A stretch of DNA of 64,000 nucleotides, taken from NCBI GenBank assembly GCA_907165135.1, contig OU015567.1, positions 1,860,001 through 1,924,000 on the forward strand, in the 5' to 3' direction. The translations under genes and the position numbers were made by a program. Shown piece by piece: positions 394-52,230 of this stretch. The notes beneath the pieces were generated by a model. The model was not told where the DNA came from. It did no database searches and saw nothing but the letters and a program-made list of their open reading frames with translations. Every line of letters begins with the position of its first letter. The stretch's first letter is position 1. Source of the stretch: Oikopleura dioica (lineage: Eukaryota; Animalia; Chordata).

Positions 394-1433
394 TTAAGGA
401 AGGTCTTGTAATTTTGATTCCAGGTGATTACGAGTTGAAATCAAGGAAGAGAACTCTATTTTTTCTAGTGGAGACGAAAAAGCTAAAATCGTATGATGCG
501 GAAAAATCGAAATTATTTGCTAATCATGGTTTCGGAACTTGGAGGCAAAAGAAAAATTATGTTGTTTATGGGAGCATTTTCTGGATCATCGTCATGATTC
601 TTGCGAACATCATCAATTTTGAAAGGACAAAATTTCGACCTGGAATTGGATCCTTTTGCGTGAGAGAGTATAAACAGTGCACAGGGATGTACATTTTGAA
701 GTTCGAGTACAACTCGTGCTCGAGTCCATTGTACAGTTGTGCAAGCATATACAGTGATGATTATGGCATTTTCAACTTTCCGGAAAAGATCATTTTACCG
801 AATGAGAAAAGAACAGCTGTCAAAGAGGTCTTCACAGACGAAGAAACAGAGCTGAATCGAAATCTTTGTTTCCAGACTGCTGGTTTATCAAGAAATCTCT
901 GTGAAAACTTATGTTTCCAAGGTCACTTAAGTTATTATGAAGATGAAAGATATTTGACCAAGACTTATGACCCTTCTGGATTTATTGATCAGGCTCCGAC
1001 TTATAATCACACAAAGAATATCGAGTGTTTGGCGATTTGCAAGTACGCTTCTGGGATTCAAGACAGGGACGATTGCCCGCTGGAAAAGCGATGTCGAGAA
1101 GGCTGTCCGTGCAAAGGGTACAAGTGCGTGAAAGACTACCCGAGAGATGACATTGTTTTAATCAGAAAATATCACAAATACGATCAAGTTGCATTTCACG
1201 ATGAGGTCGGCTTATATAAAATGTCACCAAGTCCGTTTGTTATTAAAAGGATCCAAAGTCAATATCTTCGACATTTTATAAGTAGGGTAAACTTACAAAA
1301 AAATCAACTTTTAAACGGCAAATGGTAAGGGAATGAAACTTGGCCAGATGATAGATGGTCAAAAACGACTTTTCAAAATTTTTTTTTGGGGAAGAATCTC
1401 TATTGTTTTTCATCCCTTTTTCGTCCATTTCCT

Positions 1434-1740
1434 TCTAAAATTTTTTAGCAATAAGATAGAAAAAAATGAAGGCAACCAATAGATTCGCCTTGAATCACTG
1501 ATTATTTTCCACTAAAAAAATTTAGTAATCGGCCTCACATGACTTCAGAAAAAGGAAAAGAAGCTGTAAGTCTTTGTTATTGTCTTGGAGGACCCCCTTG
1601 GAGGACTTTATCTGCTGGAAGACCCGATTTTTAAAAAATTTTTTTCAAAGGCCAAATCTACATTTTGGCCGAATATTTTGGCCTTTTTTGGCCGGAGGAA
1701 CCTGGAGGACCCCTCAAATTGAAAACAAATGCTGGAAGAA
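1434..1740 (+). repeat. Left subterminal repeat of the hAT element (GGAGGACCCC motifs)
   Basis: Reverse complement of 11325-11515, with paired GGAGGAC motifs followed by TGCTGGAAGA. Confidence 0.85.
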
Positions 1741-1783
1741 TTATTTTTTTTTCATTTAAAATAAATATCAAATATTTTTTAAT

Positions 1784-2155
1784 TCAATTTATTATATTAT
1801 GTCGGTAAGTAACGAGGCCTTCTTGATCACCATCGTAGTTTTTGTTGAAATTGTCGAAGTCGAAGTTGTAGTAGAAATCATCGTTTTGTTGCAACTCCTT
1901 GTTGTTGAACTGGGAAAAGGCTAAAAATAAATTAATTTTGTTTAAAATATTCTTTCATATCTTACCATGCAAATAGCCTCCAGCATAGCAAAGACCTCCA
2001 AACACCAGAATCAACCCAACTGGGAAAAAAAATTTAATTAAATTAACAATATTAATCTTACTCATCAAAAATTTCTTCATTTTTGCCGGTTTTTTTTTCT
2101 CTTCCTCTTCTTCTTCCAAACGACTTGTAGTCGAAAAAAAATCGTCTTCCGACAT
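1784..2155 (-). CDS. Small two-exon single-pass membrane protein (cargo inside the hAT element)
   Basis: MSEDDFFSTTSRLEEEEEEKKKPAK...FFFPVGLILVFGGLCYAGGYLH, then a GT-AG intron (about 1921-1965), then AFSQFNNKELQQNDDFYYNFDFDNFNKNYDGDQEGLVTYRHNIIN*. Confidence 0.6.
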
Positions 2156-2313
2156 TTTTGAAATTAAGAAAAGAAAGAGAAAAAATGATGCGATGCCAAA
2201 AAATCTAGAAAAACAGCGTCCCCGCAATCTGGAAAGGTTTCGGCGCTTTCAAAACAAGAATTACATCAGTTTCGTTTCTAGAAAGGGAGCGACAATAACA
2301 TAAAGACAAACAT

Positions 2314-3090
2314 AGTGACACCCTTATTTTGAAAATGGAAATATAGTGACACCCTTATTTTCAAAGATAAATATAGTGACACCCTTATTTAAAGTAAAAT
2401 TTTGATACTGCGACACCCTTATTTTCAAAAAGCGGAATTCAGTGACACCCTTATTTTCAAAAATCGAAATACAGTGACACCCTTATTTTCAAAAATCGAA
2501 ACACAGTGACACCCTTATTTTCAAAAAGCGGAACACAGTGACACCCTTATTTTCAAAAAGCGGAACTCAGTGACACCCTTATTTTCAAAAATCGAAATAC
2601 AGTGACACCCTTATTTTCAAAAATCGAAACACAGTGACACCCTTATTTTCAAAAAGCGGAACACAGTGACACCCTTATTTTCAAAAATCGAAACACAGTG
2701 ACACCCTTATTTTCAAAAAGCGGAAAACAGTGGCACCCTTATTTTCAGTAAGTGGAAAACAGTGACACCCTTATATTCAGAAATCGAAACACAGTGACAC
2801 CCTTATTTTCAAAAAGCGGAACACAGTGACATCCTTATTTTCAGAAAGTGGACCACAGTGACATCCTTAGTTTCAGAAATTGAAACACAGTGACACGCTT
2901 ATTTTCGAAATTCGAAACACAGTGACACCCTTATTTTCAAAAATCGAAACACAGTGACACCCTTATTTTTAAAAATTGATACACAGTGAGATCCTTATTT
3001 TCAAAAAGCGGAACACAGTGACACCCTTATTTCAAAAATCAAAACACCCTTGTTTTCAGAACAAAAATAAAGTGACACCCTTATTTTGAA
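2314..3090. repeat. 32-bp minisatellite, roughly two dozen units (ACAGTGACACCCTTATTTTCAAAAA(T/G)CG(A/G)AAC)
   Basis: AGTGACACCCTTATTT recurs at 2441, 2473, 2505 and onward with a 32-bp period. Two alternating variants (AATCGAAAC / AAGCGGAAC). Edge units are degenerate. Confidence 0.95.
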
Positions 3091-4057
3091 AATGGACATA
3101 AAATAGAAATTAAAATTAAAGCAAAGAAGCTTCCTTTTTTTTGACATATTATATTAAAAGTCAGAACATTATTGAATTTGAATTCAGCTTGAAAAGCAAG
3201 TCAAGTCAGGCGAACAAGTCGGCGATTGTTCCATCTTCGAGTCGATTAATTAATATTTGCGTTGCTTTGTCAAATATCTTGTCTAAATTATTGTGGTATC
3301 ATTATGTATATTTGTCAGCTTACGCATAAGATCCAATTCAAAATTCACTTGCGTACGATCAAGGTACCAGCCGTGCGATCCACCTGACTCACGTTTATGC
3401 AACTCGTTAAAGTAATCTGAAATTATCGAGCATAATTTAAACAACCAATTAGAAAGTCATCAATAGACAATAACTGACCCATGCAAATCACTTCGAGTAC
3501 TTGAAAAAGGTTTTAATATCTGTCAATAAATACTGAATATGATTCAATAGATAAAAAACCTCTCCTTCAATACTATTAGTTGTTTTTGATTCTCGAACTT
3601 CCGGATTTTCATGATCAACATAGAATGCGGCTTCAAGGTATTCGAATCTTCGATCTAGTTATCGGGTTTCATAGATAAGTTCAAAGTCAGATTAAAGCAA
3701 GTGAAACCCTTCCAGTAAACGTAAGCAACCCTTGAACAACGGAATACTGCTCATCATAGATTCTAAGGATCAAAATTTTGATTTAGCAAAGTCACTTGAT
3801 TAAGGTTTTTTTTTATTTTGTTGAAAGCATCCAAACTTAGATCCCTTAAAACTGTGCTTTCTTAGATTGAGTAAAGTTTTCGTGAGAAACGGGCGCGCTC
3901 GGTGTGGTCGTCCTATCTTAAGGAAGACGGTCGAGCGTAATGGCTTTTGAAGGAGTTGATCAAATTATATCAGACATTCCTACAGAAAAAAAAAAGCAAA
4001 TTTATCACATCGTTCCTTTTTTATCCCATCTATTTCCAGCATATTCGCGATCCAAGG

Positions 4058-4469
4058 CTGGGTCTCGAATCCATGGCATTTTGTTGGAGCACGCCGTGCT
4101 CTTGGGCGCCAAAAACTCCACGCGCCCGGAGCTGAAAACCGGCTGCTCCACGCGCTGGAGCAGCAAAAGTGACGGGCAAGAAAGTGAGGGGCTTATGCTT
4201 CATTATGAAATATTGAATATAAATTGTTTCAATCATGAAAACTTGATGAAAACGCAGGTGATTGAGTGCTGCGCGCAAACACTTTTTGGACGCCCGCGCT
4301 GTGCCTTCTTTGTCACCGCTGCTCCGGCGGCCGGATCATGCTCCAGCCGCTGGAGCTCCGCCCTGCTCCAGCCTCGTGGAGCTTTTTTCGCACTTGCCCC
4401 GGGGCGCGGAGCCGCGAGCGCCCGAGAGCAAACCCTGCTCCAAAAAAACGCCACGGATTCGAGACCCAG
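4058..4469. mobile_element. hAT-type MITE (8-bp TSD), nested in the large element
   Basis: About 34-bp imperfect TIR CTGGGTCTCGAATCC(A/G)TGGC...GGAGCA. TSD ATCCAAGG at 4050-4057 and 4470-4477. Confidence 0.9.
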
Positions 4470-4693
4470 ATCCAAGGTGCAATAACAAAGAGTCTCTCAA
4501 AAATGTGAATGCAAATAAAGACAGCCGTTAAAGACAGAAAAATGAGATTTGCATTCCGATTTTCAGAGACTCGTTGTTCTTCAAGGAACGAGCACGTCTG
4601 ATGATCTATAGAAAGTTTTTCCACAGTTTTTTTATACACATAAAAGCTCAATATGTGAGATAACAATCCTCTGATCATCACTGAAAAGGCAAC

Positions 4694-4895
4694 CAGGGTG
4701 TCACAATTAGATTGGAATCCAATTTGGAACCTTGTCCATTTGGAATTGGATTGGAAATTGGTTGGATTTCGGGTCTTTCCAATTGGAAAATCGAATCCAA
4801 TTGGAAAATTGGAATCAAATTGTTCAATTGGAATTTGAATTGGATTGGCAGATGGTTGGATTGACCAAAAAATTTTTTCTAATTGTGCCACCCTG
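4694..4895. mobile_element. MITE with CAGGG termini, 7-bp TSD and internal (TTGGA)-rich repeats
   Basis: TIR CAGGGTG(T/G)CACAATTAGA. AGGCAAC at 4687-4693 and 4896-4902. Confidence 0.85.
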
Positions 4896-5363
4896 AGGCA
4901 ACCGACACATCTTTTTCTCGATTGAACCGACGTACTTCAGCTTCGGTATCTTTGCATAATGGTGCAAACACCTTGATTTCAGCTGTGAAAGAAAGGCTCG
5001 AAATCTGATTTTTTCAGTTGAGCCAAAAAAAAGATCGACACCAGTTTTTGGAAAATTGGAGTGATCCCTCAAACCAAAATTTCGAGCCTTTCGAGAGACA
5101 ATATTTCCAAATCGGGTGAACTTAGAAGAGATTAAAATATCAGTCTTCGAGGGTTTTTCTTATTCAATAAAAAGATGAATTTTAAACTCCAAAGCTGATC
5201 CCTCACGTAAGGATCAGTAAGGGCTCTGGATTTGAGCATTGAAAAATTAAGAAGCATAAGCGGGTAAAGCTTTTGCATAATATCTTAAAATTTAGCAAAG
5301 CAAATCCAGATCCCTAAATCAGCAAAAGTCAGTTTTCTCGGGTCATATTTAAAAAATAATATA

Positions 5364-5972
5364 CAGTCGTTACGCACAATTCCGGAATTTTTTTCTCAGC
5401 GAAATCTTCGGAATTGTGCGGATTTCTGAAGAAAAATTTTCTCCTCTCAAAAAATAAGTTTTTATGGGGTCAATCTCAGAAATGCCTTTTTGATAGACAG
5501 CTTTGACTTCATTGAACCTTTTGTTATTCTCATGCTACGATCACGAGATTATTTATTAAATATGTTCAAATTCTAGTTTTGGGCAGTAAGGGAAATGGGT
5601 TGATGACTAGGTTCGTGGGACTAGGTTCGTGGGTTTTTGAACAAGCAAAATGTAGGATTTTATATCCCAAATGAGCCTAGTCTTCACGAACCTAGTCCCA
5701 CGAACCTAGTCATCAACCCATTTCCTTTACTGACCTAAAATGGGGAAGATACAAAAAAAACATATAATAATTCAAAATTCACGAACCCAGTCACACGAAC
5801 CATTTTTTCCGACATGGCATCGACGAACCTAGTCCGACGAACCTAGTCCTCACAAACCTGGTCATCGGTCTCGATTTTTTGTCGGAAATCTCCTGAATTG
5901 TGCGATTCGAAATTTTTCGGCTCACCCCGAAATCTCCGGAATTGTGCGTTCCGGAATTGTGCGTAAGGACTG
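5364..5972. mobile_element. Tc1/mariner(pogo)-like MITE with a nested hairpin repeat
   Basis: TIR CAGTC(G/C)TTACGCACAATTCCGGAA at both ends, TA on the left (right flank is TTA). Internal inverted repeat 5584-5732 built from CACGAACCTAGT units that continue to about 5865. Confidence 0.75.
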
Positions 5973-6489
5973 TTATAATATATTTATTGCATAATTGATT
6001 ATTTTTAAGTGATACTGTATTTCCGACCCGAGATCATTGTTAGTTCCACAGCTTTCAATTAAATCAAAAACAGTTTTCTTAATTAATCACAAAATTGTGA
6101 CTAAGCTTATTCAATTCAATTTTTGAAATCAGCCTGTGTGACAATTTTCTCCATCGCTTCTGAAAGACTTCAGAAAATCTTGAATACTGCTTAGGGTCGA
6201 CATGAGGCTTTTTCCCTGCTCTGTGGGAAAGTCTTCGATCCTTCACAGAATGAGAAAATGCTTTTACTTTCTGGCATTCTTTTATCATTCACTCTTCCTA
6301 AACTCACTTTTTCTCCAGCGGCCTCGCTGAGATAAACTCAGTGCTACGAAAAAGCGATCAGAAGATAGCGCATTATTCTGAAAGATAAATTATTCTTTTA
6401 GATTCATATTTGAATTATATAAAAACACTTTATTTTGATTTGAGAATATAAGAATGAAAGAAAATTCAATAATGCAAAGAAATTTTGAA

Positions 6490-9400
6490 TTAATCACATT
6501 CGTCTTCATCGATTTCGCCCTTCTCTATGACGTTCACATTATTCAAATTTTCATTTCGCTTATCGGCTAAAACATTCTGTTTGTTTCTTTGATTGAGATC
6601 TCTTCTTATTTTCGAGACGCTTTGTGAGCGATGCTTAGTGCGGTTCACGTGATTCTTTTGTTTGAGCCTCAAATTGACTCACGATGCGGAAGAAAATTAT
6701 TAATTAGAACATATTTTACGATTAAAAGAGACTTTTTAAAGAAAGATCCTTCCTTGAACGAAGCATTAAAAACATTAATTCATCTTTTTCTTCTTTTGTT
6801 TCTATCTTCTTCAACCAGTTAGTCGTTTTTGAGAGCTTTGCCAAAGACACAGTCCATAAATTATGGTTACAAAAGGATGAATTCGAAAAAAATTACAATT
6901 TAAATAAATATATCTTTTCTGAAATTCTTTCCTTATGGCTGTGTTTCTGAATTCTGTGTTCTTCACCAAGGAAAAGGCACGCTCCCTATAAGATTTAAGT
7001 AAGTTAATTTCAAGATTCAGTTTCATACGAAATCCTATTGTCAACGCTGAGAAATTGTCCATCCGATAAAGCGAGTTTTAAAATTTCTCTTGCTCCAAGT
7101 TGATCTTTTCGCAGGCCCTTGTAAGGATGATGGTTTATTTAATAAGAAGCTTGCTTACATACCTTCCGACACTGATAAAGATCTCAGACTCTGCAGCATC
7201 AATTGATTTTCTTGGTGAAGCTTTCACAAGATTTTCGTAAACATGCCAAAATGCCACAAACTCTTGATTGTCTTCTTGTGACGTCTTATCAAGCAAGCGC
7301 TAATGACATCATTGAAAAAAAAACTTATTTTATTTGGTTTACTTTAATAATGTTGACTTTCTTCTGGCCTCGAATTTCTTCCAAAATTAATTTTGTTTTT
7401 TCGTATTCTTCCTTGATCTCTAAGTAAGTCAAGGCCAAACCCTTAATTAAATGATGTATATTTGCAGTTTGAATTCAAATGCAAGAAGCAAAATAGAAGA
7501 TTTCGACGCGCAACATTTAGAAAAAATATACATCCTTGCCTCCGTTGCCCAGATAAAATTATTAATCAACTTGTAAACCAGTGTGATAGAGCCAAGAAAT
7601 AATTTCAACTCGAATTTTGTTGAGGATGACAATTCTTTTAAAATATTCTTTGCATAGTCGTTTGTTGTCTCGTGTCGTTGAAGAACTGGTATAATACTCG
7701 ACTCGAAAATCAAAAGATTTTGAGAATTGACCGCGGCCACTCCATGCCTTCGTAAAGTTCTTATTGATTTTCTTTTTGAAGAAAAAAGAATTCAAATGAA
7801 AATACAAAATTGATTTAGAACTTTACTTGACCCGATGTCTTGAAATAGAGATGTGCAAACGCAAACTTATCAGTGCACTTAACTGAAGCGCTTCGAACTG
7901 ATTGCGAAAAATTTAAAATGTCAGATAGCAAATCCCTGTCTGTCAAAAATAGATTCGACGATCGGCGCGGACCATAATGGTCTTCAATTTGAGAGTAAAG
8001 CTCTGCTCTCAGATCAGAGCGACTATGAGCTTCGCGAGGTTTCAGAAACATATTATATTAAGCAATTAAACAGAAAAAATAATGCTTTCAAACCTCAACA
8101 GACACTTGTCGATTCCCAAATATGACTTTCCATCAAAGTTAAAAAACGAGTGGTTTCTTGCATGTTATAGACGTGGAAAAGGGCGAAAAGCCGCGTGCCC
8201 GCATGGAATACTCGAAAAGCTCGATTTCAATAGTGAGAAAAGCCGCGCGCGCGAGGAGAAATGTGGAATTTTCAGAAGAGAGAGAAGCCGCGGTTGTGCA
8301 CGGAGAACTATAAATGCGCGGTTTTAGTAGTGAGAAAAGCAACGCGCTTTTTATAAATTGTTTTTTATTTCTAAATCGCTTGCAATTTTCGTTTTAATCT
8401 TTTAACTTTGCTTTTAACCCATTTAACATCTTTGCCACAGCATTATCCGATGTGATACCATATTTGCGCATTTCCTTCGAATTCAAAAATCTTGAGTACA
8501 ATCGCTTGTACATAATCGCTTAATTGCAAATTGTACTGAACAAATCAATTGCCAGTTTTTACCTCCATGATGCTTTGATAGGCTTTGAAATTTAACTCAA
8601 AAGTTATGATATATATTTTTAATGATTAAAACCCTTTCGCATTGTGCATCCAACTTGATGAAGATTTCTCGCCCCAGCGGCTGTTAATTCCGTTATCAGA
8701 AGCTCATTTGCAGAATAAGGGATCACAAAAAAAAATGAAATGTTATCATATTTTTGTTATCCCTGCCTTTAACCTGCGCACGACAACTGAGTCAAGGACT
8801 TTGCAATTTGTGAGAAGACCATAAGTCAGTATAAACAAAAGATTTAATAAAAAGTCGGGTTCTAGGTTCTCTTTAAATATGCGAAGCCCAAGCTGTCACT
8901 AAAATGACATATAGAATAAAATTAAAGAGTTTATAAAAACCTCAGAATAAAATGAATCTTTGGAACAAGCTCTGACATGATATTCAAATTTCGTAGCTCA
9001 TCCATAACGCCAGTTTTGATTTCTTCAGATTTTCCACCATGAAGTTTAAAAAGGGATAAAAGAAGGGAATTTCCATCTTGATCAATCAAAGATAAACCCA
9101 TAAGCGGGACTTGACGATTTGATAAAAAAGAGCTCATAAAATGTATCGTGATTTTGAAAGGAAACAAGGATTTTCTTGTTAATTATCAATTTAAACGAGA
9201 ACCATTTAATGAGCTCTAGTTGTCGTTGCATCAGAAATTTGGTTACTCTCACGAGAAAAATTAAAATAGTTTAATTCAAATTCATTATTTAAAAGTGCAA
9301 CCCCGGTCCATCGCCAATGTTATCGAAGTCGCATCGTTCAAAAACTGATTTCGTTGTGGGACCAATAGAACGGGAATGACTTGTTAAAAATGACAGGACT

Positions 9401-10599
9401 CAATTAATTTAAATCATAAAAAGGAAAGACACGGCTTTCAAGGAAATGAAAAGCCAGGGAAGAGAGAAAGCGGCCTTTAAGACAAAAAAAAAATTTGAAA
9501 ACCAAAGAAATGACAATATAGAAAGCTAAGAAAAGAAAAACTGTGACACTTAAAAGCTGTCACTTTGCTTTTACCAGCGAGTTTATAAAAGTGCTGCTTT
9601 GGTTGGGTCAAAACAAAATTCTTGTTGATTTTTCGCGCTGAAAGTAGTCCGACCTTTTCTTGGTACAAAATAGTCATCGTTTTTTCTCAGATGATGCAAA
9701 CATTGATTGACGTCGATCAAATGTTTTAATAAGCTTATTATAGCTGGAGTCGATGTACCATCCATTTTTGCACATACGAGTAGAAGCTGCATTTGTGGAT
9801 TCCAAATCCTTCTTGACCCCTGTTAAGGTTTAGATATTGTCATTATATTTGAATGAACGCTCAAAATTTTGTTTAAACCAGTTGCCTGTCCTCTTCTGTC
9901 CTTTTCGGGATCATAACTTTCTTTTGGTCTCTCTATCTTCGTAAAAAAATCAGAAAATGAGCTTAAAATAAATAAGTTTAGAACAGAATTTTCAAAAGTA
10001 CCATCCGTCGGCGGATCCAGTAAAATCAGTACCAAAAATTTCATCTTCACTCTCATAGTCCATGTCATCTTCAACAATATCAGTATCCTGGAACTCGACT
10101 GACATATCAAGTGCTGAGTCTCTTCTTGTCTTTTCAGTACAAAAAAAGGCTGACGTTTTTGAATATGGTGTGGCAAGAATATCGAAGATTTTATGTCGAA
10201 TCCGTTTTTCGTAAAAATACTCGTCAAAAACAGAAACTTCTATTTGTTCACGTGGCCACAACATTTGTCGGCTTCGTCCATTCTGCTGTTTAATCGAGCT
10301 AAATTTTTTTCGAAAACAAGATAAGTAATAAAAATATACTCGAAGACGAAGCTATTGATTGCAGAGCTTCCAGCTGAAGTGCCTTTTGCAGAGGCACGTA
10401 CGTAATTCTTCCAATTAACTGCTTTACCCTCATAAAAATGTTTTGATTTTTGTTCCCAAACTGCCTCAGTTGTTATTTTTTGCTCGAAACATGCACGTTT
10501 TATCACATCCAATGTTAGTTCACACGAATTATGCTCAGTGCAAAAAGCGAGAGAAATGAATAAAAACAAAATAGCCATTTTTCTCTTATATTCGCCCAT
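6490..10599 (-). pseudogene. Intron-rich, decayed hAT-like DDE transposase of the 10.4-kb element
   Basis: Motifs in order on the minus strand: FLNDATSITLAMD (D at 9306-9308), LMGLSLID...KIHFIL|SDS (D at 8895-8897 across a 42-nt GT-AG intron), CRAQVK..ANELLITEL...QVGCTM (Cys at 8646-8648; the His of CxxH is not directly seen), VDNRIS|ERAFSLVK (E at 6982-6984 across a 43-nt GT-AG intron), SLAKLSKTTNWL. About 110 bp interrupts the exon after SDS. 5' and 3' ends are approximate. Confidence 0.75.
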
Positions 10600-10769
10600 G
10601 GCTCAGAAAGAACAAAGCGCGCCTACGCTCTTTAAATAACAGAATCAGCAGAATAAATCGATTTCAATAATCACGTTGTTTTTCTGTGTTAACCCCTGTT
10701 TAATAAGAGTTTCTCAATTTTCATTGAAAAAACCGTAAAAGAAGTCTCTGACTGATTAGAATAGATTTC

Positions 10770-11040
10770 CGTGGCCTCCGCTTCGGGTCGGCTGTGCCCT
10801 GTTTTTGAGAGAATCGAATACATTGGCGTTGCCTCCCCTTCGGGTCGGCTTCGCCCTGTTCCTGACTGAATTATCTGGCTACCCCGTATGGGTTGGCTTG
10901 GCTCCCTCAATGACTGAACTAAATATGCTTGTATGGCCTTTTCTACGGGCTAGTCTTGCCCTGTCTTTATCCGAATAGAGTATGCTTAGTTGACCTCTCA
11001 TGCAGGTCGGTTTGGCCCCCTTCATCACTGAATTTAATGT
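10770..11040. repeat. Degenerate ~57-bp tandem repeat (about 5 units) inside the right end of the hAT element
   Basis: GCCTCC.CTTCGGGTCGGCT..GCCCTGTT at 10773 and 10831, followed by more diverged units. Confidence 0.7.
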
Positions 11041-11064
11041 GATTTATTTCTTATTTTTTTGAAT

Positions 11065-11515
11065 GTTGGTCTTCCACTGATGTTGTGTCTTCCAGCATAA
11101 GGGGTCCTCCGGGGGTCCTCCGGCAGAAAGTGACCAAAGTTGGCTGAAAGTGGCAATTTCTAGCCAAGCTAGACATATTATTTCAAAATTTAATTTTCGT
11201 CTTCCAGCTGATGGTCTTCCACCAGGGAGGTCCTCCGGGGTCCTCCGGCCGAACTAGACCAAAGTTGACCATAGGTGGCCATATACTGGCCGAGCACGGC
11301 CATATATTGAATATTTATAATATTGGTCTTCCAGCAGATAAAGTCCTCCAAGGGGGTCCTCCAAGACAATAACAAAGACTTTCAGCTTCTTTTTCTTTTT
11401 CTGCAGTCATGTGAGGTCGATTACTAAATTTTTTTTTTGGAAAATAATCAGTGATTCAAGGCGAATCTATTGGTCGCCTTCATTTTTTTCCATCTGATTG
11501 CTAAAAAATTTTAGA
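11065..11515 (-). repeat. Right subterminal repeats of the hAT element
   Basis: Three GGTCTTCCA...GTCCTCC(GG/AA)GGGGTCCTCC blocks (about 11101, 11226, 11341). 11325-11515 is inverted relative to 1434-1624. Confidence 0.85.
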
Positions 11516-11957
11516 TTTTTAGCACTTTTACACGGCTCTAGAATGACGTCATTCATATTTTTTCATTAATTTTTTTATCTGATGTTGATCAGCAACCTTC
11601 AAAGAGTATTCTTGCCGAAAATGAGCCCTGTAGGATGTCCCTTTCAAAAGCTCATTTTTTGTAAGTTTACCCTATTTATAAGTCATCACGGCACTTTCTG
11701 CTCAGTTTGGTTCGAGGGAGCTCATTTTATCCTCGTTGCATTGACCAGTCAGTCTCGATCAATGTCAGGCAACACTGATATTGAGGTCTACAAGATGCTT
11801 GACTCAGGCGAGCTCCACTTCCTTCAACTTTTCCAATTACGAGAGCCAGTATTATTTTCATCAAGATACAAAATTTGTGGCACCGGCCTATATAAAAGCC
11901 TATTCGATATAGTGATGGGGCTCTTAAACTTGACTCTTTGCGAAATGGGGCACATTT

Positions 11958-14900
11958 TGTACGTGTTTCTCACAGTACATAAGTTGGATAACTAACTGCG
12001 TTTACTGTATTCGCGAGCTGGATACAAGTGAGCGACGAAGTTTGTATAAAAAGAGCAAGTTTATTGTTGAGTCTCTGAGCGTAAAATAGTAGAGTATATG
12101 TGTGTTGTGTCTCAGTGAGAAATAAGATCGTTTATATATGGTTTTCGTAAACCGTGGTGAGCTGTTAGATCGTGGTGAGTGACTATTTCGTGAGTTGTGA
12201 GTTGATCCTAGTCCATGGTGAACTGTGCTTTCGCGGTTCGCGGCGGAGCGTTTGCGCGTGGTGAAATGCGCTTCGCGAGTCGTGAATAGCGCTTCGCGGG
12301 TCGTGAACTGCGCGCAGCGCGGCGCGGTGAACTCAAGTGGCGGATGACTAATGAGAAACACTACATAATTCCTCCTCCATTTATTTTTAGATCGTTTGTC
12401 TTTCTGGTAGAGGAATGTCCTGTGTTTGTGAGTCCAAGATATCATCAAGGATGTTTGTCCATAATCAGTGATTGTTGTAAAGGATCGTTTTCCATTTGGT
12501 TGTCAGCATCAATGGCGGCTGTCGAGCAAGATCAACCGGAACGTAGTTGATTATTGAGTTTTCGCTTTCGATGAACTGTATTTCTGAACGATCCGAGGTG
12601 TTTGTTGATGAATCTTTTAACCCAAGGTGTTTCAGGTGTTCGTGTATTATGAAGGTGACCTAAGATTTCAGAAATCGTCGATCGGCATTTCGATATTTTC
12701 AAGTCTTTTCAGAAGCTCTTTTTGGAAGTGGAGGCTAAAGGGTGTCCATTTTTCGATCGACCAATAAGGAGCTAGAGCGCCGTTACTTCTTTAATTTCTA
12801 GAATTTGGAGGCCAGCATACTCTTCCCTCTTCTTTTTGAGCATTTGGATCTTCTGAGCGAGCATCTTGTATGAGCTGATTGTTTGAGCAGATGATTTCAT
12901 TAGTGAGCATATTTGAGCAAAATCGTCTTTGAGCAATATTTCATGGGCGAGCAGGATCGTAGTCGGAGTCTCGATAAGAGTGAGCTGTATTGTATTATAT
13001 AACGATTTCATGAGCTTCAAAATCGTTGGTGAGCAGCTTGATAAGAGTGATTTTCGCTGATTGAGAGGACAATTCCGTGAGGCTCAAAATTGTCTATGAG
13101 CAACTTGATAAGAATCAGCTGAACTGATTGAGAGGACGGTTCCATGAGCGTCAAAATCGTCTATGAGCTTCATTGCAGGTTAATTGTTAGAGAAGACATG
13201 AACGTCGAAATCGTCTTTGATAATGAATTGAGCAGACGGTCCCATGAGCGAGCAGAAACGTCTTTGAACAACTTGATCTCGATCGTTTGAGCAGATGAAT
13301 CTTCGAGCGAGCAGAATCATCCTTGAGTAACTTGATTATGAATTATCTGAATGTGACAAAGCAACTGCACGCATTGCTTCACATCTTTAGAGGAGTGGAC
13401 CAAGGTTCAGATAAGCGGTGTTCATCGTGTGCGCAATTGATAAACACATTAGCTGGGTCATGAGAACACAAGTCCAAAGAGGCCTGTATGAAACTTCTGC
13501 ACAGCAAATGAGCGGAACTGGATTCCCTTTGATCATCAGCGGGGATTACTTCGAGCTCTGAAGTGAGCCATTCCAGTGTGCATAAACATTGCCGAAGTTT
13601 TTGATCCAATAAACGAGCTTCAGGTATACCTTAAGAACAGGACTTCGAAAAACAGATGTCGAGCGAACTTCGTAACCAAGTGTGAATAGGAGCAGGAGCA
13701 AGAGCTTAATGGTTTGATTTACATCGTCGTGAGCGAAGGCGATGTTTCAATTTCGGAGCTTGAACTTGAAGTCCATCATCTCTATCAACAGGCTCATGTT
13801 GATCTTTATGAGGGCTTCTGATACTTTGATCTTCTTTTCGTATCATTATGAGCAGGAGCTGGAGCAAGATCTTGATCGAGCTGATCTTCTTCCGCTTTAG
13901 GATCCTCATTTTTATTGAGAACAAATTTTGTTTGATTTTCAGCCATTACAGTTGGAGCGGTCGGATCAGGCTGGTATGTCGCAGGTGTAAGCGGGCATTT
14001 GACAAGGTAACTTTCCAGAGAAATGATCTGCTTTCCCGCAGAGAACAGATGTGTAGATCTCGAGCGCAGGGCAATTTTCTTGTGTCTTTTAGGAGCTTCT
14101 GGTATTGTTGATCTTCGAAGTTGAGCAGAGCAGAATGAAGTGTTATCATGTATTGATTTATTTTTTTGATGAACGATTCCAAGATGTGGACGGCAGCTTT
14201 TTTGAGCGGAAACGGAACATGAAATTGTCGTCCAAATACACATTGATTGCTTGGTAGTCCATAATGGCTTCCATGAGCGATTCGTTACGAGTTGAGCTTT
14301 GAGCTTTTGATAAAATTGATGGTAGATATTTATCGCATTTTCCATTTCATCTCGAGTAGTTAACAGTTGTTCTGATGTGTCGAATTCGGAAAATTGTCGG
14401 TCTTCGATGAACGATGGTCGAAGAATATTGAGCGGTTAACGTCGAATACGAGTTCGAGATAAACTTGAAATTGAGCGAATTGTTTAATCTTCGTTTTTGA
14501 TCAATTGCTTTATGTGACTTGGAACATAGTCTGAGTGGATAAATTTGCATTTCGAGCCGTATTTGCATGATCTCCGTTTCACGAAGCTGATACAGAATCC
14601 ATCGATCTTTGATGTGTCGATTCTGGTTTGTTTTCGATTTCTTTCATTTGGCTTCAAATGATCCTCAGTATGAACTTTCTGGACTTTGATCTTCTGGTTC
14701 CGGATTCGGTCCTTGGTGTTTTTGTTCTTCTTCAGATGTGATCGTTGTTTTTGTCGAACATAATCATCAATTTCGCACCAGTCCGGAGAATATGAGTCCA
14801 AGAGGGATTCTTCTAAGTTTTCACGTTCTTTTTGATCTTGCAATTTCATCAAGGCCATAAGCTCTGCAAGTGTCGTTGCTCTAGCAGAGGCGAGGATCTT

Positions 14901-15653
14901 GGTAACATCCAGACGGTGATTCTTATAAGCGAACTTTTGATCCATACCAATAGCGTCATCATTCGGTAAGTAATTGATGATTTCACCATTATCGTGGAAC
15001 ACAAACTTTCGATTTTTGGCGAAAACCCCCTCATCCAATTTATGGATGTTCAGAACAATTGATTGCTTCTCTATAATTGGATGCTGTGGCGGAAACGACT
15101 GATTCAAATTTTCAAAGATCGTGAGCAGTTCTTGTCGGTTCAGATCAGCGGCAAGTTTGAAATATCGAGTCATGTTTCTTAACAGCAGCTCTCTTCGATC
15201 GTTAATCTCTACATGGGCGAAGCGTTTTCTTCAGTCACCAAAATATGTACGTGTTTCTCACAGTACATAAGTTGGATAACTAACTGCGTTTACTGTATTC
15301 GCGAGCTGGATACAAGTGAGCGACGAAGTTTGTATAAAAAGAGCAAGTTTATTGTTGAGTCTCTGAGCGTAAAATTGTAGAGTATATGTGTGTTGTGTCT
15401 CAGTGAGAAATAAGATCGTTTATATATGGTTTTCGTAAACCGTGGTGAGCTGTTAGATCGTGGTGAGTGACTATTTCGTGAGTTGTGAGTTGATCCTAGT
15501 CCATGGTGAACTGTGCTTTCGCGGTTCGCGGCGGAGCGTTTGCGCGTGGTGAAATGCGCTTCGCGAGTCGTGAATAGCGCTTCGCGGGTCGTGAACTGCG
15601 CGCAGCGCGGCGCGGTGAACTCAAGTGGCGGATGACTAATGAGAAACACTACA
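11958..15653 (-). mobile_element. Non-autonomous LTR retrotransposon (3.7 kb)
   Basis: 408-bp LTRs at 11958-12365 and 15246-15653 (TG...CA, one substitution noticed). 4-bp TSD ATTT. PBS TGGTGAC next to the 5' LTR. PPT AAATGGAGGAGGAA next to the 3' LTR. No RT or integrase motifs seen. Confidence 0.93.
14484..15173 (-). CDS. Gag-position ORF with a CCCH zinc finger
   Basis: First ORF after the PBS (229 aa). CISFVKRRSCKYGSKCKFIH fits C-x8-C-x5-C-x3-H and follows a basic region. Confidence 0.7.
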   Translation of the reverse strand: MTRYFKLAADLNRQELLTIFENLNQSFPPQHPIIEKQSIVLNIHKLDEGVFAKNRKFVFHDNGEIINYLPNDDAIGMDQKFAYKNHRLDVTKILASARATTLAELMALMKLQDQKERENLEESLLDSYSPDWCEIDDYVRQKQRSHLKKNKNTKDRIRNQKIKVQKVHTEDHLKPNERNRKQTRIDTSKIDGFCISFVKRRSCKYGSKCKFIHSDYVPSHIKQLIKNED

Positions 15654-17181
15654 ATTTGCCTCGTTGCGCCTGTTTAGTTTAAAATCCCCGATAAAGAAAC
15701 AAAACAGTACGTAAAAGAAGAAAGAATTTTCTTTTGTCCAAATACACACTTTGCTTCTGATTGCTACTTTATTGATGCTAGTAATGAAAACAAGGATTTT
15801 GGTTAAAATCTTTTCTTCATTTTAAGATCATCTGAATCAAAAGTATTCAACCAAAATTTCAAGTTATATTTACGCAGTCTCGGGTCATCAAGGCTAGGAG
15901 CAGTGATAACTCACGATGGTAATGGAATATCGACGATGAAATTGAATGGATATTTTGTAAGCTCGGTTGTACGAAAACAAGGATTAAAATATATTTTTAA
16001 GACGATCGTAAGCTACAATTCTCTGTTAAGTACAATCGAAATTGATAAATTTTTGGGAATGAAAAAAACTGTTCCGGAATGGAGCTACGAATCTGTCTAT
16101 CGATCATCAACTTACCGTTCAAAGAAAGACAGATATGGGAATGTCATCGAAGGATCGTTCTTTCTAGCCGCTTTGCCAGACAACGAGGGAGTCCTCTTAC
16201 TCACGTCAAACTTTGATATTCTTTCATCGGTGGATAGAATAACCATAAATCGTATTTATAAGAACAACTGGTTTTACGTCGTTGTTTTTAAAATTCCGAA
16301 GATAAGAAATCGACTTGTCGATATAAGGAAATGGCTCGAATCGACTTAGTTTAGACAACAAAACTATGGACCATAGTTCCGACCATTTGACAGCTTTCTT
16401 GATACGGCTTTCATCCTTCAGGGAAAAATCTTCGTCGATCGAAAAATCGAGACTTGCTTTGGAAAATTTTATGGACAAAGATGCGAAAGAGTCTTGGTGA
16501 CTGGGTCAGAAATATTTCTTCTTGATTACGAAAGAAAAACTCATATGAAGCAAGAATTCCAGATCGATCTCCCTGAAAACTACGCCTATGAGATGACCGT
16601 GTGAATAAATGAGCTTCCAGTTCAATTTTTTATTCATTTAATGGCATATGAATATGTCTAAAATTGAGTAGTCTAAGAACATTTTCCGTAGAAACATTCA
16701 CTAGTCAGTTGTTCGCGCTGTTCGTTGCAAAGAGATGCATCCAGTCCCTTTTAAATAAGCTTGAACGAATGAATGGCCAGTATTTTACCTTGCAATGGAA
16801 AATACTTTCAAGACACAATTTAGCATCTTCTTTGGCTTCACAAAAATTGTACGCGTAAATGCATTCGGAATTCCCCGAGAAACAGGAGACTTTGAATTCA
16901 CTGTCGATGATCGTTTTGTCGAATCCAACCCATGATTTCCAACCTGCTTCGAGGATTACTTCTCTGGCCTATTGTGAAAGAAAAGAATCTGCAATCCATT
17001 GCCTTTGGCGTCACTTGGACAGCCTCGAGTTTTGTCTGAAAAAATTCCCAAATGGCCTACTGTCGCCCTAAAAAAGAAGAATTTCGCGCGTCTGATTTCC
17101 AACAGATGCAACAAGCCTACCAACCTTGGTCTGTCGCTGATGTAGTACTGTCCAGACTCGTTGTAAATGACATTGCCATGT

Positions 17182-22800: not shown

Positions 22801-24857
22801 GTTGTATTCTGGAGCATAATAGAAACATTTATCAGACCTTTGTGTTGGGGAACTTTTCACGATCAATATTTGACATTTTGTTGAAAGCGAACAAAGAAAT
22901 TTAGACCGTTTTCAGATGACGACAACGGGAAAAGTTTGCACGCCGTCTTCTTTGAGTGGGATCTCTATTTGATGGGTTCCAATTGAAGATCCGAAGTGAA
23001 AGACGAAGAAACCCCTTTTAAAAATAAAATTATGGTTTTATAAAAGGGGATAAAATTTTTAAATAAATTGTTGAAAATTTCAATGCTAAATTGAGCTAAT
23101 TTAAGGGACTCTTTTCGGAGCAGAATAAGTCCCTTATTTGTAGGGGAAATCACTTATAATTCGACTTTTTTCTGGGCTTAATAGGGTGGGCATATAATAC
23201 AGATTTAGAAAGCCCAAGAGCTGGCGATCATTTTGACTATTGAAAGTGGGGGGTGATTTCGTACCCTGAGGGCGTTAAGGTACCCCTGAAGTCCCAAAAT
23301 CTGGCCAATTTCGGAAATGTGAATTTTCGGTTAGTTAGGGCTTCGAAAATTCACATTTCCGAAATTGGCCAGATTTAAGGACTCCCTCAGAGTACAAAAT
23401 CACCCCTACTTTCAATAGTCGAAATGATCGCCAGCTCTTGGGCTTTCTAAATCTGTATTATATGCCCACCCTACTAAGCCCAGAAAAAAGTCGAATAATT
23501 AGTGATTTCCCCTACATATTTGTAAGAAATTACTTCAAATAATGTTATTTTATACTCCGACTGTACTTACAGTGCATGATTTCCATTGGGAAAAAACTTG
23601 TAACGGGTACCACTTTCGTTTAAAATCATTAAATTTCCCTTTGCATCAACAAGGTAATGCTCCCCAGTGAGAAAAGTCGCACCGGTTGACTTTAAAGTTT
23701 TTCGCATTTGTTTAACTCGTATCTCCAAAAAGATGCTAAAACCGTTCGTGAGAGTAAAATTTGCAACTAGGAATAATCGGGGTGTTTGTCTCTTTTTCAT
23801 TAAAGTCGGTAAAAATAAGTGTAAAATTTTTTTGCTTCGAATTTTTGTTCTCCCAGCGGCCAGTTATCAATTCAAAATTATATTTCTCTTCTTTTTCGTG
23901 GCATTCTTGTTCATTCGTACTACGCTTTGATCTATTTTTCTCTTCTATTCGAGTATTTAAAATCGCTTTTTCAGCATTTTCTTGAATTTTCAACCACGGT
24001 GTCGCGGTCATTGAGGTCCAAAGAGTTGCCATTTCTGTTGTTGAAAAAGTACGGGGCTCTTCAGTCGTTGAAAGAAAACTGATTGTTTCTTCCTCTTCAA
24101 GGTTAAAGGTGGGAATCAATTTCTGCGGCGAGTTATTCTTTTCGCACTGATAATGAGGACAAGGACATCCTTTAGCACAGTATTGTTCAGTAGGGCAAAC
24201 AGCTCCGGCGGAATCAAATGATCGCGTGAGTTCGAAACAAATTGATTCACAGGGGGAAATCGGGTTGTTCCTTGTCGATTCGAGTACGAGGGTCTTTGAA
24301 CAAAGATGGCGGCAGATCTTTGTATCGTAAAACTTTTTCTTTTGGCAGCGAAGGAGATTTATTTTATTTTCTTCCTCAGTGAATTTTTCTGCTGGCTTTT
24401 TCTGTCGCTCAATCTGAGAAATTCGCACAGGGAGTTTGAATTGCTTAGTTTCGTAGCATTTCTTCATCAGATGGCCGCAGTAGTCCATGGTTTCTAGCCG
24501 AATACATTGTTTGTAGTTTCGATTGCAAGTAGAAGTCAGAAAAGTCGTGACGGCGCGAGATTTTTCAAGAGAGATGAAGTTTGCTAAAAAAATTATTTCG
24601 GTCATTTTTTAAAATTTACTTAGAAGCATGATCGCCACCCAAAAGAGACTCCCAAGCCCGACATAAGTCCATTTCTGCTTGTTTGTCGCGAATCCATGCT
24701 CAGACAAGCTCAGGTTTTCAGTGATTTTTTTCTTCAAAGAAGGCTTTTTCAAATCTTCCTCTTGAGTCAAGATACTGCGGGTAGTCAAAATTTCTTCGGG
24801 GAATAAGTAAACTTTTCTTCCCTTTTTTCTCAAAGTTCCAACACATTGACAGTCCAA
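19811..24857 (-). CDS. Large multi-exon TM + Cys-rich + kelch-like repeat protein (paralog of the split host gene), interrupted by MITEs
   Basis: HGFATNKQKWTYVGLGSLFWVAIM matches HGFGTWRQKKNYVVYGSIFWIIVM of the 414 ORF. CPTEQYCAKGCPCPHYQC. C-terminal kelch-like blades (QLHIFGG, GLYNNQPTVVGG, MLTVGG). Stop at 19811-19813. Confidence 0.75.
20431..20997. mobile_element. MITE with CTGGGCTCGGCAA TIRs hosting a nested TTAA MITE
   Basis: 13-bp TIR of the same family as 22273-22422. No TSD recognisable. Confidence 0.65.
20483..20829. mobile_element. Kolobok-type MITE (TTAA TSD, GG...CC ends)
   Basis: TTAA|GGACCCCC...CGTCAGCT and AGCTGACGGGGGTCC|TTAA. Confidence 0.85.
22273..22422. mobile_element. 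150-bp hAT-type MITE inserted in coding sequence
   Basis: TIR CT(C/G)GGCTCGGCAACC. 8-bp TSD TCTGTCAA at 22265-22272 and 22423-22430. Confidence 0.9.
23139..23516. mobile_element. Fold-back MITE (near-perfect 378-bp palindrome) in an intron
   Basis: TGTAGGGGAAATCACT...AGTGATTTCCCCTACA with arms pairing almost to the centre. TATT on both flanks. Confidence 0.9.
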
Positions 24858-25660: not shown

Positions 25661-26056
25661 GAATTCAGAAGTCGTTTTCGTGAAAAATGTAAACTAAGCC
25701 CTCTTCAATTGGATTTCAATTAAAGAAAAAAGGATGATTCTGCGGTTAGATAATTTCAAATTCGCCCCCCTCTCGTTGCAAATCCAAACAAGCTCCGTTT
25801 TTTTCTCATGTTGATCTGCCATCCCGCGTTTACAAACAAATGACCAGGGCATAAATATTTTCCGATGAGGCTCGAGTTTTCAACGTGGTGGCGTCCATAA
25901 CAATAAATTATCATTTATGAAAACAAATTTCTATTGTTGATTTTTTTTATTTGGTGAACTTGTTTCAATGGCAGTTTTTTGTTAAAATGACATGTTGTGA
26001 CGCATCAGATCCAAATACTGAATAGAGTCAAAGTTAAATTGAAAAAAAATATTTAA

Positions 26057-26841
26057 GGATATAGCCTTGAATATTGAACTTTCGTAGCGCCGAATCCCTG
26101 TTACGAATTCATTCATTTTTCAAATTAACCCTACCTAAAATTTATCGTAGATTTCGAAAATGACCTTATTTTTAGTACTTTCTATGGTGTTTGTACCTAA
26201 AAATCGCCTTTAAAATAAAACAGACCGTCGTTCTCTGAAAATTTCCATTAATAAGGTAAATTTGGATTGATGATATGAAAGATTGAAGCCTTATCTCCAA
26301 TCTAGCGGTGGATTTTGTAAAAATATTGAAGATTATGGCTTCTACTAACTGGTTTATGATTGTACTTCGAAATGGAGAGTGGCGCGCGCTGCCAATCAGA
26401 GCGAGGGGAGAATCTCAGTTAGATTTCGTCCAAGCTGTCGACAAAATTTCTCGCGTAAAATAGGATGAGCGATGGCTGAGTGAGATTTTCCCCTCGCTCT
26501 CATTGGCTGCGCGCGCCACTCTCCTTTTCGAAGTACAATCAAAAACCAGTTCCTAGAAGCCGTAATCTTCAATATTTTTACAAAATCCACCGCTAGATTG
26601 GAGATAAGGCTTCAATCTTTCATATCATCAATCCAAATTTACCTTATTAATGGAAATTTTCAGAGAACGACGGTCTGTTTTATTTTAAAGGCGATTTTTA
26701 GGTACAAACACCATAGAAAGTACTAAAAATAAGGTCATTTTCGAAATCTACGCTGCATTTTAGGTAGGGTTTCTTTGAAAAATGAATAAATTCGTAACAG
26801 GGATTCGGCGCTACGAAAGTTCAATATTCAAGGCTATATCC
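26057..26841. mobile_element. Kolobok-type MITE with very long (~350 bp) TIRs
   Basis: TTAA|GGATATAGCCTTGAATATTGAACTTTCGTAGCGCC...GGCTATATCC|TTAA. Related to 50973-51706. Confidence 0.92.
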
Positions 26842-27543
26842 TTAATAAAATTTTTAAATTAAAACAAAAATTAAAAAACAAAATTTCAAGTTCGAAAATA
26901 GTTTTCGCAAAATTTTTGTTTTTAAATTTCAAAATTCCGGTGACTTTGACAATCAATTTTCACAAAATTCAATTTAAAAATTTTTCAGGACTCTTTCCTC
27001 GCCAAGATCAAGGTCTAAGCCATTTAAACTCGCCGAAAAAACTCCGTCGTCTTGATATTCTTCCGGTTGAACTGACCTTGTCTGTACCAATTGCTGATTG
27101 TACCATTGTTGAAGCTTTTTTGGCTCTTTTAAGTTAGAAAATCATAATTGTTTAAAAGAAATTCGAGCCGTACCCAAGGGGCTGCGGTGCAAACACTGAT
27201 CAAATAGGAAAATCTCATCTTTTAAAAAATCTTGTCACACTTTTTCTCTTCTTCTAATTTCTAAATCATTGGTGCTTACTTTATATGCAGCCGCTGGAAT
27301 ACCAAATAAGCTTCTTATTATATATTTATCCATGGCGCTGGTAGGGATTTGCCTTGACGTGCACTCTCGTTTTTTAATTATAAGGGTTTATTTCCTGATA
27401 ACCGGACTTATCAGGGCTCGATTGGTTTAAAAAAAATGAAAATGAAAATCAAGGATTTTCAGTCCTGGAGTGACTTGGAACAAGAATTTCAATAAATTAT
27501 TATGTATTATAATTTATATTCAATATCGTACAATTGATTGCGG

Positions 27544-50243: not shown

Positions 50244-52230
50244 TTATGCCGACAACAGCTCATTCCCCGTCTCATCCACTACTTTTTCTTCGACCAAATA
50301 TTTTTCTTCTTCAAGATTTTCTTCATCTTTTATTGCTTCTTTTCCTGATTTTTTCTTCTTGGCGACGAATAGAACCACTCCACTGATAAGCGCGATGCTT
50401 AAAAAGCTGGAAAGCAGATATGTTGATGATCCAGAATTATCTTCAACAGTTATTGACTTTGAGATTTATAGATTTCTTACTTTCAAAGATTTCTAAATAA
50501 GAATTTGTCGGGAAAGAGCATTGGCAAGGGTCATCCACTTCACGTTTTGGTCGGTAGACCGGGACAGCTGTTGAACTTGAATTTTCATCGTCCGAATAAA
50601 TGTAGTAGTCCTCATTGTAGTCATAGTCAACCTCATGGTTATTGCAACCAGGACAGGGTAGGAACTCGAGCCAATGACCTTCGCATGAACTAAGAGCGCT
50701 AGGAAAAAAAGAGTCATGATTTTTTCATCTCATCTCAATATTATCTCTAAATTCAAGAGCTTACCCTTCTTGGTCCGTCATGCAAGTCCGAGTTCGTTGT
50801 GTAAAAACACTGTCATTGTCACAATAGCCAGGCTTAGACCACTCTGACCAAGAACCAGGAATTGCTGATGATCGGGAAGAGGAGCAACTCATGTAGACTT
50901 CTGATTTGCCGTGAATACAACTTCCTCCGTGAATTCGATAATTTTTGATTTTGCACTAGAATCTTTGCTTAAGGATATACCCGATAAAATTGAACTTTCA
51001 TAGCGTCGAAATGCGACGTAGGATCATTTATATTTCAAAAGCAATTCTACGTTAAAATGCACGTAGAACTCAAATCTGGTACTTCTTTATATTTTCTCAC
51101 TTGAATTTTTCTCTTTAGAGCGATTTCAAATCTTACTCTCTCGATTACTCGAAATTTTTTGTATAAATCGGTCGAGATTTTTCGATAGATAAGTTCTTTA
51201 GACAGTTATCTACAATTTTGATGGTTTACTTTTCGTTAATTCCGAAGAAAACGGATTCTAGAGCCATTTCATTGAGGGCTACTCAACGCGTAAAAGCTCT
51301 ACAAAGCGGCGCGCTGGGAGCTCACTCACTCGACTCCTCTTTTCCGAGAGAAAGTGCGTGGTTGAGCGCACCGCTCTGATTGGTAGCACGCGAAAAAACG
51401 CGCAGAGAAGAAAATCACTAGAATGGAAATTCGATCGAGTTTAAGAATTTGATCCCATCAATTTTGTAGCTTAGCATCATTGCAATACAGAATACTGTTC
51501 AGTTTTAGCGATTTAGTGGAAAAATTTCGAGCAATCGAGAGAGTTCGTTTTCAAATCGCTCTAGAGAGGAAAATTCTAATGAAAATATCTAAAAAAGTAC
51601 CAGAATTGAATTCTACGCACAATTTTAAGTAGGATTGCTTTTGAAATAAAAATGATCCGACTTCGTATTTAGGCGCTATGAAAGTTCAATTTTATCGGGT
51701 ATATCCTTAAAAATTCATCGTTGAAATCAACAAGGACTCACCTCATCCAAACTTGAAGCATCGCCACAATCAGAGCCGGACATTGAATATTCCAAATCAC
51801 AACTATTTGTTGTTTCTGTTGCATTTCCTGGATAGTTATCTCGTGTTCCAATAAATTCTGCATTGTCAAAGCCTAGATTTTGGCAAAGAAGATCGGCGAA
51901 TGTTTGGTCAAAGGGATGAGTCGATGAACCTTGGCAAACAAGACCCCAGTGCGGAGGATCTCCGAAGCCGAAATCGTAGCCGCCGAAAAGAAGACCTAAA
52001 ATGTTCTAGAGATGGATGTTTTCGAAAACCATTATTTTACTTTAATAGTTCAGAAGTTTTAATGATTTTCAGATTCAAATAACTATGAAACACAAGTTTA
52101 ACCAAATGTACCAAATAAAGGATGCAGAGAAATTCAAAATTATTAATGCAAAAGCATAGAAATCTATAAATTAGAGCCAATTCCTACCCGAGTCAGCATT
52201 TTGAAGTCGAAATCTAGGTTTCCCCTCCAT
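50244..52230 (-). CDS. Membrane protein with SRCR-like and TSP1 domains
   Basis: WGLVCQ..FDQTFADLLCQNLGF (SRCR), GSWSEWS..C...QRTRTC (TSP1), TM LLSSFLSIALISGVVLFVA followed by KKKK. Confidence 0.75.
50973..51706. mobile_element. Kolobok-type long-TIR MITE in an intron
   Basis: TTAA|GGATATACCCGATAAAATTGAACTTTCATAGCG...CGCTATGAAAGTTCAATTTTATCGGGTATATCC|TTAA. Confidence 0.92.

Follow-up and report, generated by a model that had tools for sequence, protein, structure and literature searches.

A 10.4-kb hAT-like element with a divergent transposase gene and two further genes, inserted in a coding exon of Oikopleura dioica

A single insertion that splits a host exon

The stretch analysed here (the window: 64,000 nucleotides of contig OU015567.1, positions 1,860,001 to 1,924,000, GenBank assembly GCA_907165135.1) comes from the repeat-rich short arm of chromosome 2 (contig C5) of Oikopleura dioica OKI2018_I69 (PMC8008620), and holds a single 10.4-kb insertion, at 1283-11674, inside a coding exon (Table 1). 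A preliminary description made from the letters alone had read it as a hAT-type transposon splitting a host open reading frame (ORF), and its structural observations were borne out: the terminal inverted repeats (TIRs) are identical across 20 bp and differ from base 21 onward, an exact 8-bp target site duplication (TSD) flanks them, and the subterminal inverted arms extend over 191 bp at 95.3% identity. The predicted rejoining of the host frame (RHFIS/HHGTF) also held when codons were followed from 414, with R at 1269, H at 1272, F at 1275, I at 1278, a serine formed by AG (1281-82) and T (11683), and HHGTF from 11684. As the codons line up across AG+T, excision leaving one TSD (1283-11682 out) restores the frame. 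The TIR is present once per strand in the window, and in the 64.28-Mb, 19-contig O. dioica OKI2018_I69 assembly (Okinawa), which was used for all genome searches, it had 34 matches at up to 2 mismatches relative to 3 for a reversed control, so it is not a chance repeat.

The exon was formerly continuous. Two orthologues from marine metagenomes (L068 and L069, 44-47% identity) have a single unbroken frame across the site, carrying 11 residues there as compared with 12 in the rejoined host, and in run X5, from another study, depth was zero over 6000-10799, with a 538-nt contig aligning from exactly 11675, the first TSD base, and bearing 262 non-element letters before it, as would be expected of an empty allele. 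The uninterrupted exon is thus the older state and the insertion the derived one, and the shared TSD, the single TIR pair and the continuity of the exon elsewhere agree with the proposal that everything from 1283 to 11674 moved as one unit.

Further copies with their own TSDs, which the preliminary description had named alongside an empty allele as things to look for, were also present. Exact 8-bp TSDs, all different and none extending to 9 bp, bound 11 of the 13 TIR pairs examined (this element and 10 of 12 siblings). The ten TSD-bounded siblings are non-autonomous and measure 0.4-4.8 kb, the two pairs without an exact TSD span 1.0 and 5.5 kb, and sibling interiors are mostly ~55-57-bp repeats. 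One sibling, L014, has both ends in common with the element at 98-99% but a repeat-filled interior; the left ends of the two differ by 3 substitutions over ~336 bp and the right ends by 4 over 235 bp, so the ends were recently active. No second full-length, cargo-bearing copy was found in the assembly, and the suggested family of large gene-carrying elements was thus not upheld. All 11 exact TSDs fit the consensus NNYATDNN (A4-T5 in the centre, Y at position 3, no C at position 6), with Y3-A4-T5 in 11/11, T2 in 3/11 and A7 in 2/11, the share of AT among all dinucleotides of the window being 7.9%.

Table 1. Features of the insertion and its flanks (MITE, miniature inverted-repeat transposable element; LTR, long terminal repeat)
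Feature	Position	Strand	Remarks
Host ORF, left part	414-1282	+	multi-copy Cys-rich family, 38 genome matches
TSD, left copy	1275-1282	+	TTTATAAG; exact 8-bp match to right copy
Left 20-bp TIR	1283-1302	+	TAGGGTA start; GT at 1287 usable as splice donor
Left end	1283-1740		includes inverted arm 1434-1624; 99% identity to L014 across 1283-1624
Gene C	1787-2155	-	three exons; ~94 aa; AATAAA at 1793
32-bp tandem array	2308-3047		23.2 copies, 85% matches
Gene B (predicted; both ends approximate)	3206-6380	-	multi-exon ORF
Nested MITE 1	4058-4469		412 bp; TIR start CTGGGTCTCGAATCC; 8-bp TSD ATCCAAGG; splits gene B exon
Nested MITE 2	4694-4895		202 bp; CAGGGTG termini; flanks AGGCAAC (7 bp in register); splits gene B exon
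Nested MITE 3	5363-5973		high-copy; 25-bp TIRs; flanked by TAT; internal inverted repeat 5577-5739
Divergent DDE transposase gene	6496-10599	-	~19 exons, many 40-46-nt GT-AG introns
GC-richer single-copy stretch	8055-8415		~360 bp; breaks transposase between two homologous blocks
Right end	10744-11674		57-bp units 10744-10870; ~125-bp units 11103-11339; arm 11325-11515; TIR 11655-11674
TSD, right copy	11675-11682	+	TTTATAAG; exact 8-bp match to left copy
Host ORF, right part	11683-11916	+	broken again at 11917 by small element containing LTR element

Read by eye, the left end contains degenerate GC-rich units resembling the ~125-bp units of the right end, whose last 235 bp are 98% identical to L014. 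The subterminal arms were considered as a nested foldback element and this was rejected, no direct repeat being present at 1434/11515. An 831-aa ORF within one sibling (L018, C4 8.247 Mb, 2187-4682) was likewise rejected as an autonomous transposase; it has RT-like (reverse transcriptase) motifs and a GIY-YIG domain, and is a Penelope-like insert nested in a non-autonomous sibling element. On the Y-specific contig C3, a facing pair of identical TIR variants was found 25 kb apart (2878121-2903207).

No confident Pfam family was assigned to the left part of the host ORF. The host allele is likely null, because the allele has a second insertion, from 11917, and the gene is one of a multi-copy family. 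Splice rescue through the TIR sites is possible on paper: by frame arithmetic, GT at 1287 with AG at 11664-65, both within TIRs, would leave 21 in-frame bases without a stop, and GT at 1282 with AG at 11704-05 would remove 24 bases. The absence of the TIR AG from three sibling subfamilies favours chance.

The second insertion is a ~73-bp GGGG...CCCC element (11917-15689, 3-bp TSD GAT) in which an LTR element is nested (11958-15653, LTRs 99% identical across the 300 nt compared, 4-bp TSD ATTT); the exon that it breaks is contiguous in L069, and GT at 11912 with AG near 15678 would be in frame. The closest host paralogue (L035:2243-3438, C1 ~1.1855 Mb) is interrupted by a different, unrelated insertion of ~1.2 kb that has TAGGG/CTGGGG-like ends and no clean TSD and lies in the same exon stretch, a few codons from the corresponding site. 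Further MITE-like inverted repeats in the window were seen at 241-401 (upstream of the host ORF), 23136-23519, 26043-26855, 50969-51710 and 63031-63573.

The transposase gene and its passengers

The largest gene inside the element, a divergent DDE transposase gene of ~4.1 kb, accounts for ~40% of its length. Putative catalytic positions were located at D1 (near 9308), D2 (8898), a CxxH site at 8648 reading C-T-M-R, and a candidate E near 6984 which is in frame only with a read-supported extra A at 7079. Reads showed one more A than the assembly at 7079 (three runs) and at 6348 (two runs), and both homopolymer errors shift frames. Two variants of the interior, differing by ~0.5%, exist as well.

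One minus-strand piece, searched as protein, matched three further loci in the genome. At one of these, L056, six homologous blocks follow in the same order and run towards a terminus 72% identical to 1290-1384, so that, judged by sequence, a second locus pairs this gene with this kind of end. The other two, L057 (C1 5.36 Mb) and L058 (C5 1.33 Mb), are 94-97% identical copies in which D, D, CxxH and E are all present; annotated as ordinary genes, they are candidate active helpers. An unrelated contig, L060, matched three window exons collinearly (E 3e-5, 1.5e-7 and 7e-9). Relatives were taken from a 1.84-billion-protein library, and a profile of ten homologues, containing no window sequence, ranked the minus-strand pieces 9383-9288, 9182-8934 and 7791-7450 top of 2757 window fragments, in profile order, with E-values of 2.5e-5, 4.5e-7 and 0.049. 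Genome-wide the same profile gave E 8.6e-4 and 30 matches, 14 of them on the 2.9-Mb contig C3.

In the structure predicted for one homologue, P0006, helices follow an RNase-H core, and the best Foldseek match was Hermes (E 1.1e-6, ranks 1-9), with ISCth4 at rank 10; the main gene is thus homologous to a DDE clade with a predicted Hermes-like fold. Searches of PDB sequences and of Rfam were blank, as was Pfam with 20 window pieces, and the transposases of this genome that carry PF05699 showed no similarity to the element interior. Six contigs related to P0006 (L061-L066) were rejected as independent insertions, as they resemble alleles of a single locus and have no TIR.

This copy of the gene appears decayed. 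The CxxH motif reads CSLHHG in L060 and CTMHHG in L056 and is also kept in L057 and database homologues, so by alignment the histidine has been lost here (CTMR); in Kat1 hairpins fail to form once CxxH is lost, and Hermes is crippled by mutation of His268 (PMC4763223). A frame check by script found that junctions i6, i8 and i11 need GG/GA donors (two of the core junctions among those needing GG or GA) and that i16 has no parse, and the stretch at 8055-8415 could be parsed only with a GG donor, dropping conserved residues. A promoter scan of 8000-8450, with a bacterial model, gave chance-level counts. Because of the lost histidine, the odd donors, the 360-bp interruption and the unparsed junction, the enzyme would be inactive or weak; this copy is probably inactive, and movement was probably in trans. 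In both copies the first transposase exon (10599-10340, and L056:2800-2555) has a hydrophobic, signal-peptide-like start, which is unusual in an enzyme of the nucleus; this leader could be a separate upstream gene or non-coding.

Two further genes lie within the element. Both introns of gene C (2061-2020, 42 nt, and 1965-1921, 45 nt) are GT-AG, and the predicted product has an acidic N-terminus, one hydrophobic segment and a D/N/F-rich tail; it looks like an intact small membrane-protein gene, with no relative found in the genome or databases in a homologue search weakened by a length limit. Gene B, split by three MITEs in all, would begin with a hydrophobic, signal-peptide-like segment provided that the extra A seen in reads at 6348 is correct, and runs for 134 stop-free codons across two MITE excision joins, as happened in 8 of 20,000 simulations. 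It is probably a pseudogene, because 3 of the 6 other junctions tested have no in-frame parse; no relative was found with one exon in the genome and the others in Pfam and the Atlas only. Both genes can be regarded as cargo in the sense of non-transposase genes, apparently passengers without a traced host parent, and they may be or have been expressed.

MITE 1 has a 97-98% copy on contig C2 at 4.42 Mb, and MITE 3 has dozens of genome matches at 79-93%. The length is made up of the transposase (4.1 kb), the span of gene B (3.2 kb, including 1.2 kb of MITEs), the tandem array (0.74 kb), gene C (0.37 kb) and the ends (~1.4 kb), with nested MITEs and array together contributing ~2 kb. The preliminary description had seen several ordinary genes here; two non-transposase ORFs were found, but the largest gene is the element's own transposase, and no host parent was detected for 6000-10700 (as DNA), for one B exon or for gene C.

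How the element came to lie in the exon

We think it probable that this is a once-autonomous, divergent hAT-like element, decayed inside, that was moved into the host exon by a related transposase. It would have started as a member of a divergent hAT-like family with TAGGGT termini, an 8-bp TSD and a central-AT preference. Its interior would then have aged, with the transposase losing the CxxH histidine and some splice sites while three MITEs and the tandem array accumulated, whereas the ends would have stayed intact and been bound by a related transposase encoded elsewhere, which would have cut out the whole 10.4 kb and pasted it into the host exon, duplicating 8 bp, with genes B and C riding along. 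Which transposase did the moving, its action in trans and the null host allele are points that we infer.

Several observations weigh against this account. No intact transposase was found between matching TIRs, and among the other clade loci only L056 adjoins a related end, its far end not having been reached. A window piece served as the seed for the homologue set, and the fold lends moderate support, the model being that of a homologue with a predicted template modelling score (pTM) of 0.37 and a VIA-align Z of 8.6 to Hermes, tied with integrases. Given the homopolymer errors at 6348 and 7079, other apparent lesions may be errors too, and O. dioica uses non-canonical introns, so some of them may be real introns.

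Capture of the Pack type, in which two non-autonomous hAT ends bracket and carry ordinary host genes, is unlikely. Genes B and C are not transposase-like and C looks intact, the first transposase exon starts with a signal-like hydrophobic run that is also in L056, and the interior at 6000-10700 is single-copy in the genome, as a cut-and-moved block would be. The largest gene, however, is a DDE transposase with a related end at a second locus, no parent or paralogue was found for the tested B and C exons (one B exon in the genome search), and capture could account for no more than ~2.3 kb of the 10.4-kb element.

It is quite unlikely that the element is autonomous and active, its odd junctions being non-canonical introns and its His-to-Arg change tolerated. 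D, D and a candidate E are present, many introns are canonical at 40-46 nt, and almost every junction has some in-frame parse. Three runs also gave the interior roughly double the contig depth of the right junction (208-235 vs 94 in X1, 63-71 vs 38 in X2, 7-9 vs 4 in X3), as a second copy at another site would give, contig depth not being equal to copy number. Set against these are the lost CxxH histidine (PMC4763223), the 360-bp interruption, the unparsed junction and the single copy in the assembly.

A Mutator-like (Pack-MULE-type) element in place of a hAT is very improbable. Pfam hits of homologues to Mutator-like element (MULE) families were weak and below cut-off (E 6e-4 to 8e-3; PF10551 at 17-21 bits vs 27.6), ISCth4 appears at Foldseek rank 10, PF05699 is absent and the subterminal inverted arms are long; yet TSDs are 8 bp and never 9, the short TIR starts with TAGGGT, Hermes ranks first, and most of the neighbours named in the Atlas belong to hAT families, at scores of 0.82-0.85 that count only as leads. 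That the ends are independent small MITEs flanking ordinary chromosome, which the preliminary description had named among the findings that would overturn it, is scarcely credible and already refuted: repeat arms like those at these ends occur in many 3-5-kb repeat-filled elements, but one TIR per strand is present in the window, one TSD is common to both ends, the exon halves 10.4 kb apart are contiguous in orthologues and the interior is absent in X5.

A broader and improbable proposal is that of an undescribed hAT-related lineage. Such a lineage would have its own central-AT target preference and a transposase without standard hAT Pfam domains; its full-length members would be multi-gene, with membrane or secreted passengers and possibly a hydrophobic leader fused to the transposase, would still be mobile at 10 kb, and could be spliced from host exons via TIR sites, leaving a 7-residue in-frame scar.

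These data describe a transposon two to three times the normal hAT size that moved recently in one of the smallest animal genomes, its size arising from introns, nested MITEs, arrays and passengers with the ends kept intact. Its contents, as read here, do not support wholesale movement of host genes. The transposase clade was missed by Pfam and is found in marine metagenomes besides its 30 profile matches in O. dioica; together with the target preference it is useful for transposable element classification and for Oikopleura annotation, where L057 and L058 are listed like any other gene. Should splicing at the TIR sites prove functional, the element bears on intron gain.

Relation to known transposon systems

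The assignment to hAT made in the preliminary description was retained in part. The 8-bp TSD was exact in this element and in 10 of the 12 sibling pairs, the 20-bp TIR is short (the hAT range is 5-27 bp; PMC3517528), and homologues have a predicted Hermes-like RNase-H DDE fold with a helical insertion. The C-terminal dimerisation domain PF05699 gave no hit in the window, its pieces or the homologues, which may reflect divergence, and the N-terminal BED zinc finger, common but not universal in hATs, was not detected by Pfam in the 5' pieces, P0001 or P0006; because PF05699 was not found, the element is filed as hAT-like. Nothing bearing directly on large cargo hATs in animals or on larvacean MITE-introns emerged from a literature search.

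In Pack-MULEs the host fragments can be traced, TSDs are 9 bp and TIRs are long, whereas here the transposase of the element itself is the main gene, no parent was traced for the passengers and no TSD reaches 9 bp. Introner-type DNA transposons insert into exons with ends that offer a GT-AG pair, a property that the element shares (21-nt in-frame scar); those are short elements, unlike the 10 kb seen here.

The hATm termini TAGGGTG...CACCCTA (Zhang et al. 2018, PMC6004678) agree with the element at 6 of 7 bases (TAGGGTA) and with sibling subfamilies at 7 of 7 (TAGGGTG in L015, L020, L021, L022, L030 and L031), and the 8-bp TSD is also alike, as are the long inverted terminal regions of hATm-6 (417-575 bp TIRs; PMC6004678). 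Most hATm consensuses have T2/A7 (Zhang Table S3), a preference not seen in the 11 TSDs here, and hATm-6 has PF05699, with which this clade does not score. Membership of hATm is unproven, the comparison having covered ends, TSDs and PF05699.

Hermes, Ac and Buster resemble the element in their 8-bp TSD, TIR length, RNase-H-like D-D-E core and helical insertion, and the homologues of its transposase in CxxH (CTMR in this copy), Hermes being the best structural match of the homologue. The target consensus differs, being nnnTAnnn in Buster (PMC3517528) and nTnnnnAn, T2/A7, in Hermes/Ac (PMC8721813), and neither BED finger nor PF05699 was detected here; among the described hAT groups checked, NNYATDNN appears unlike Buster, Hermes/Ac and most listed hATm consensuses. 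The 10.4-kb element, with ~19 exons and passengers, also contrasts with the <4 kb of Hermes and other hATs (PMC3517528). In size (>10 kb), several genes, nested elements, low copy number and movement by intact ends the element resembles large cargo-carrying non-autonomous TIR elements, Pack-MULEs and ToxhAT/ToxTA among them; unlike the element, ToxhAT has a TA TSD and has been reclassified as Tc1/mariner (PMC12506042).

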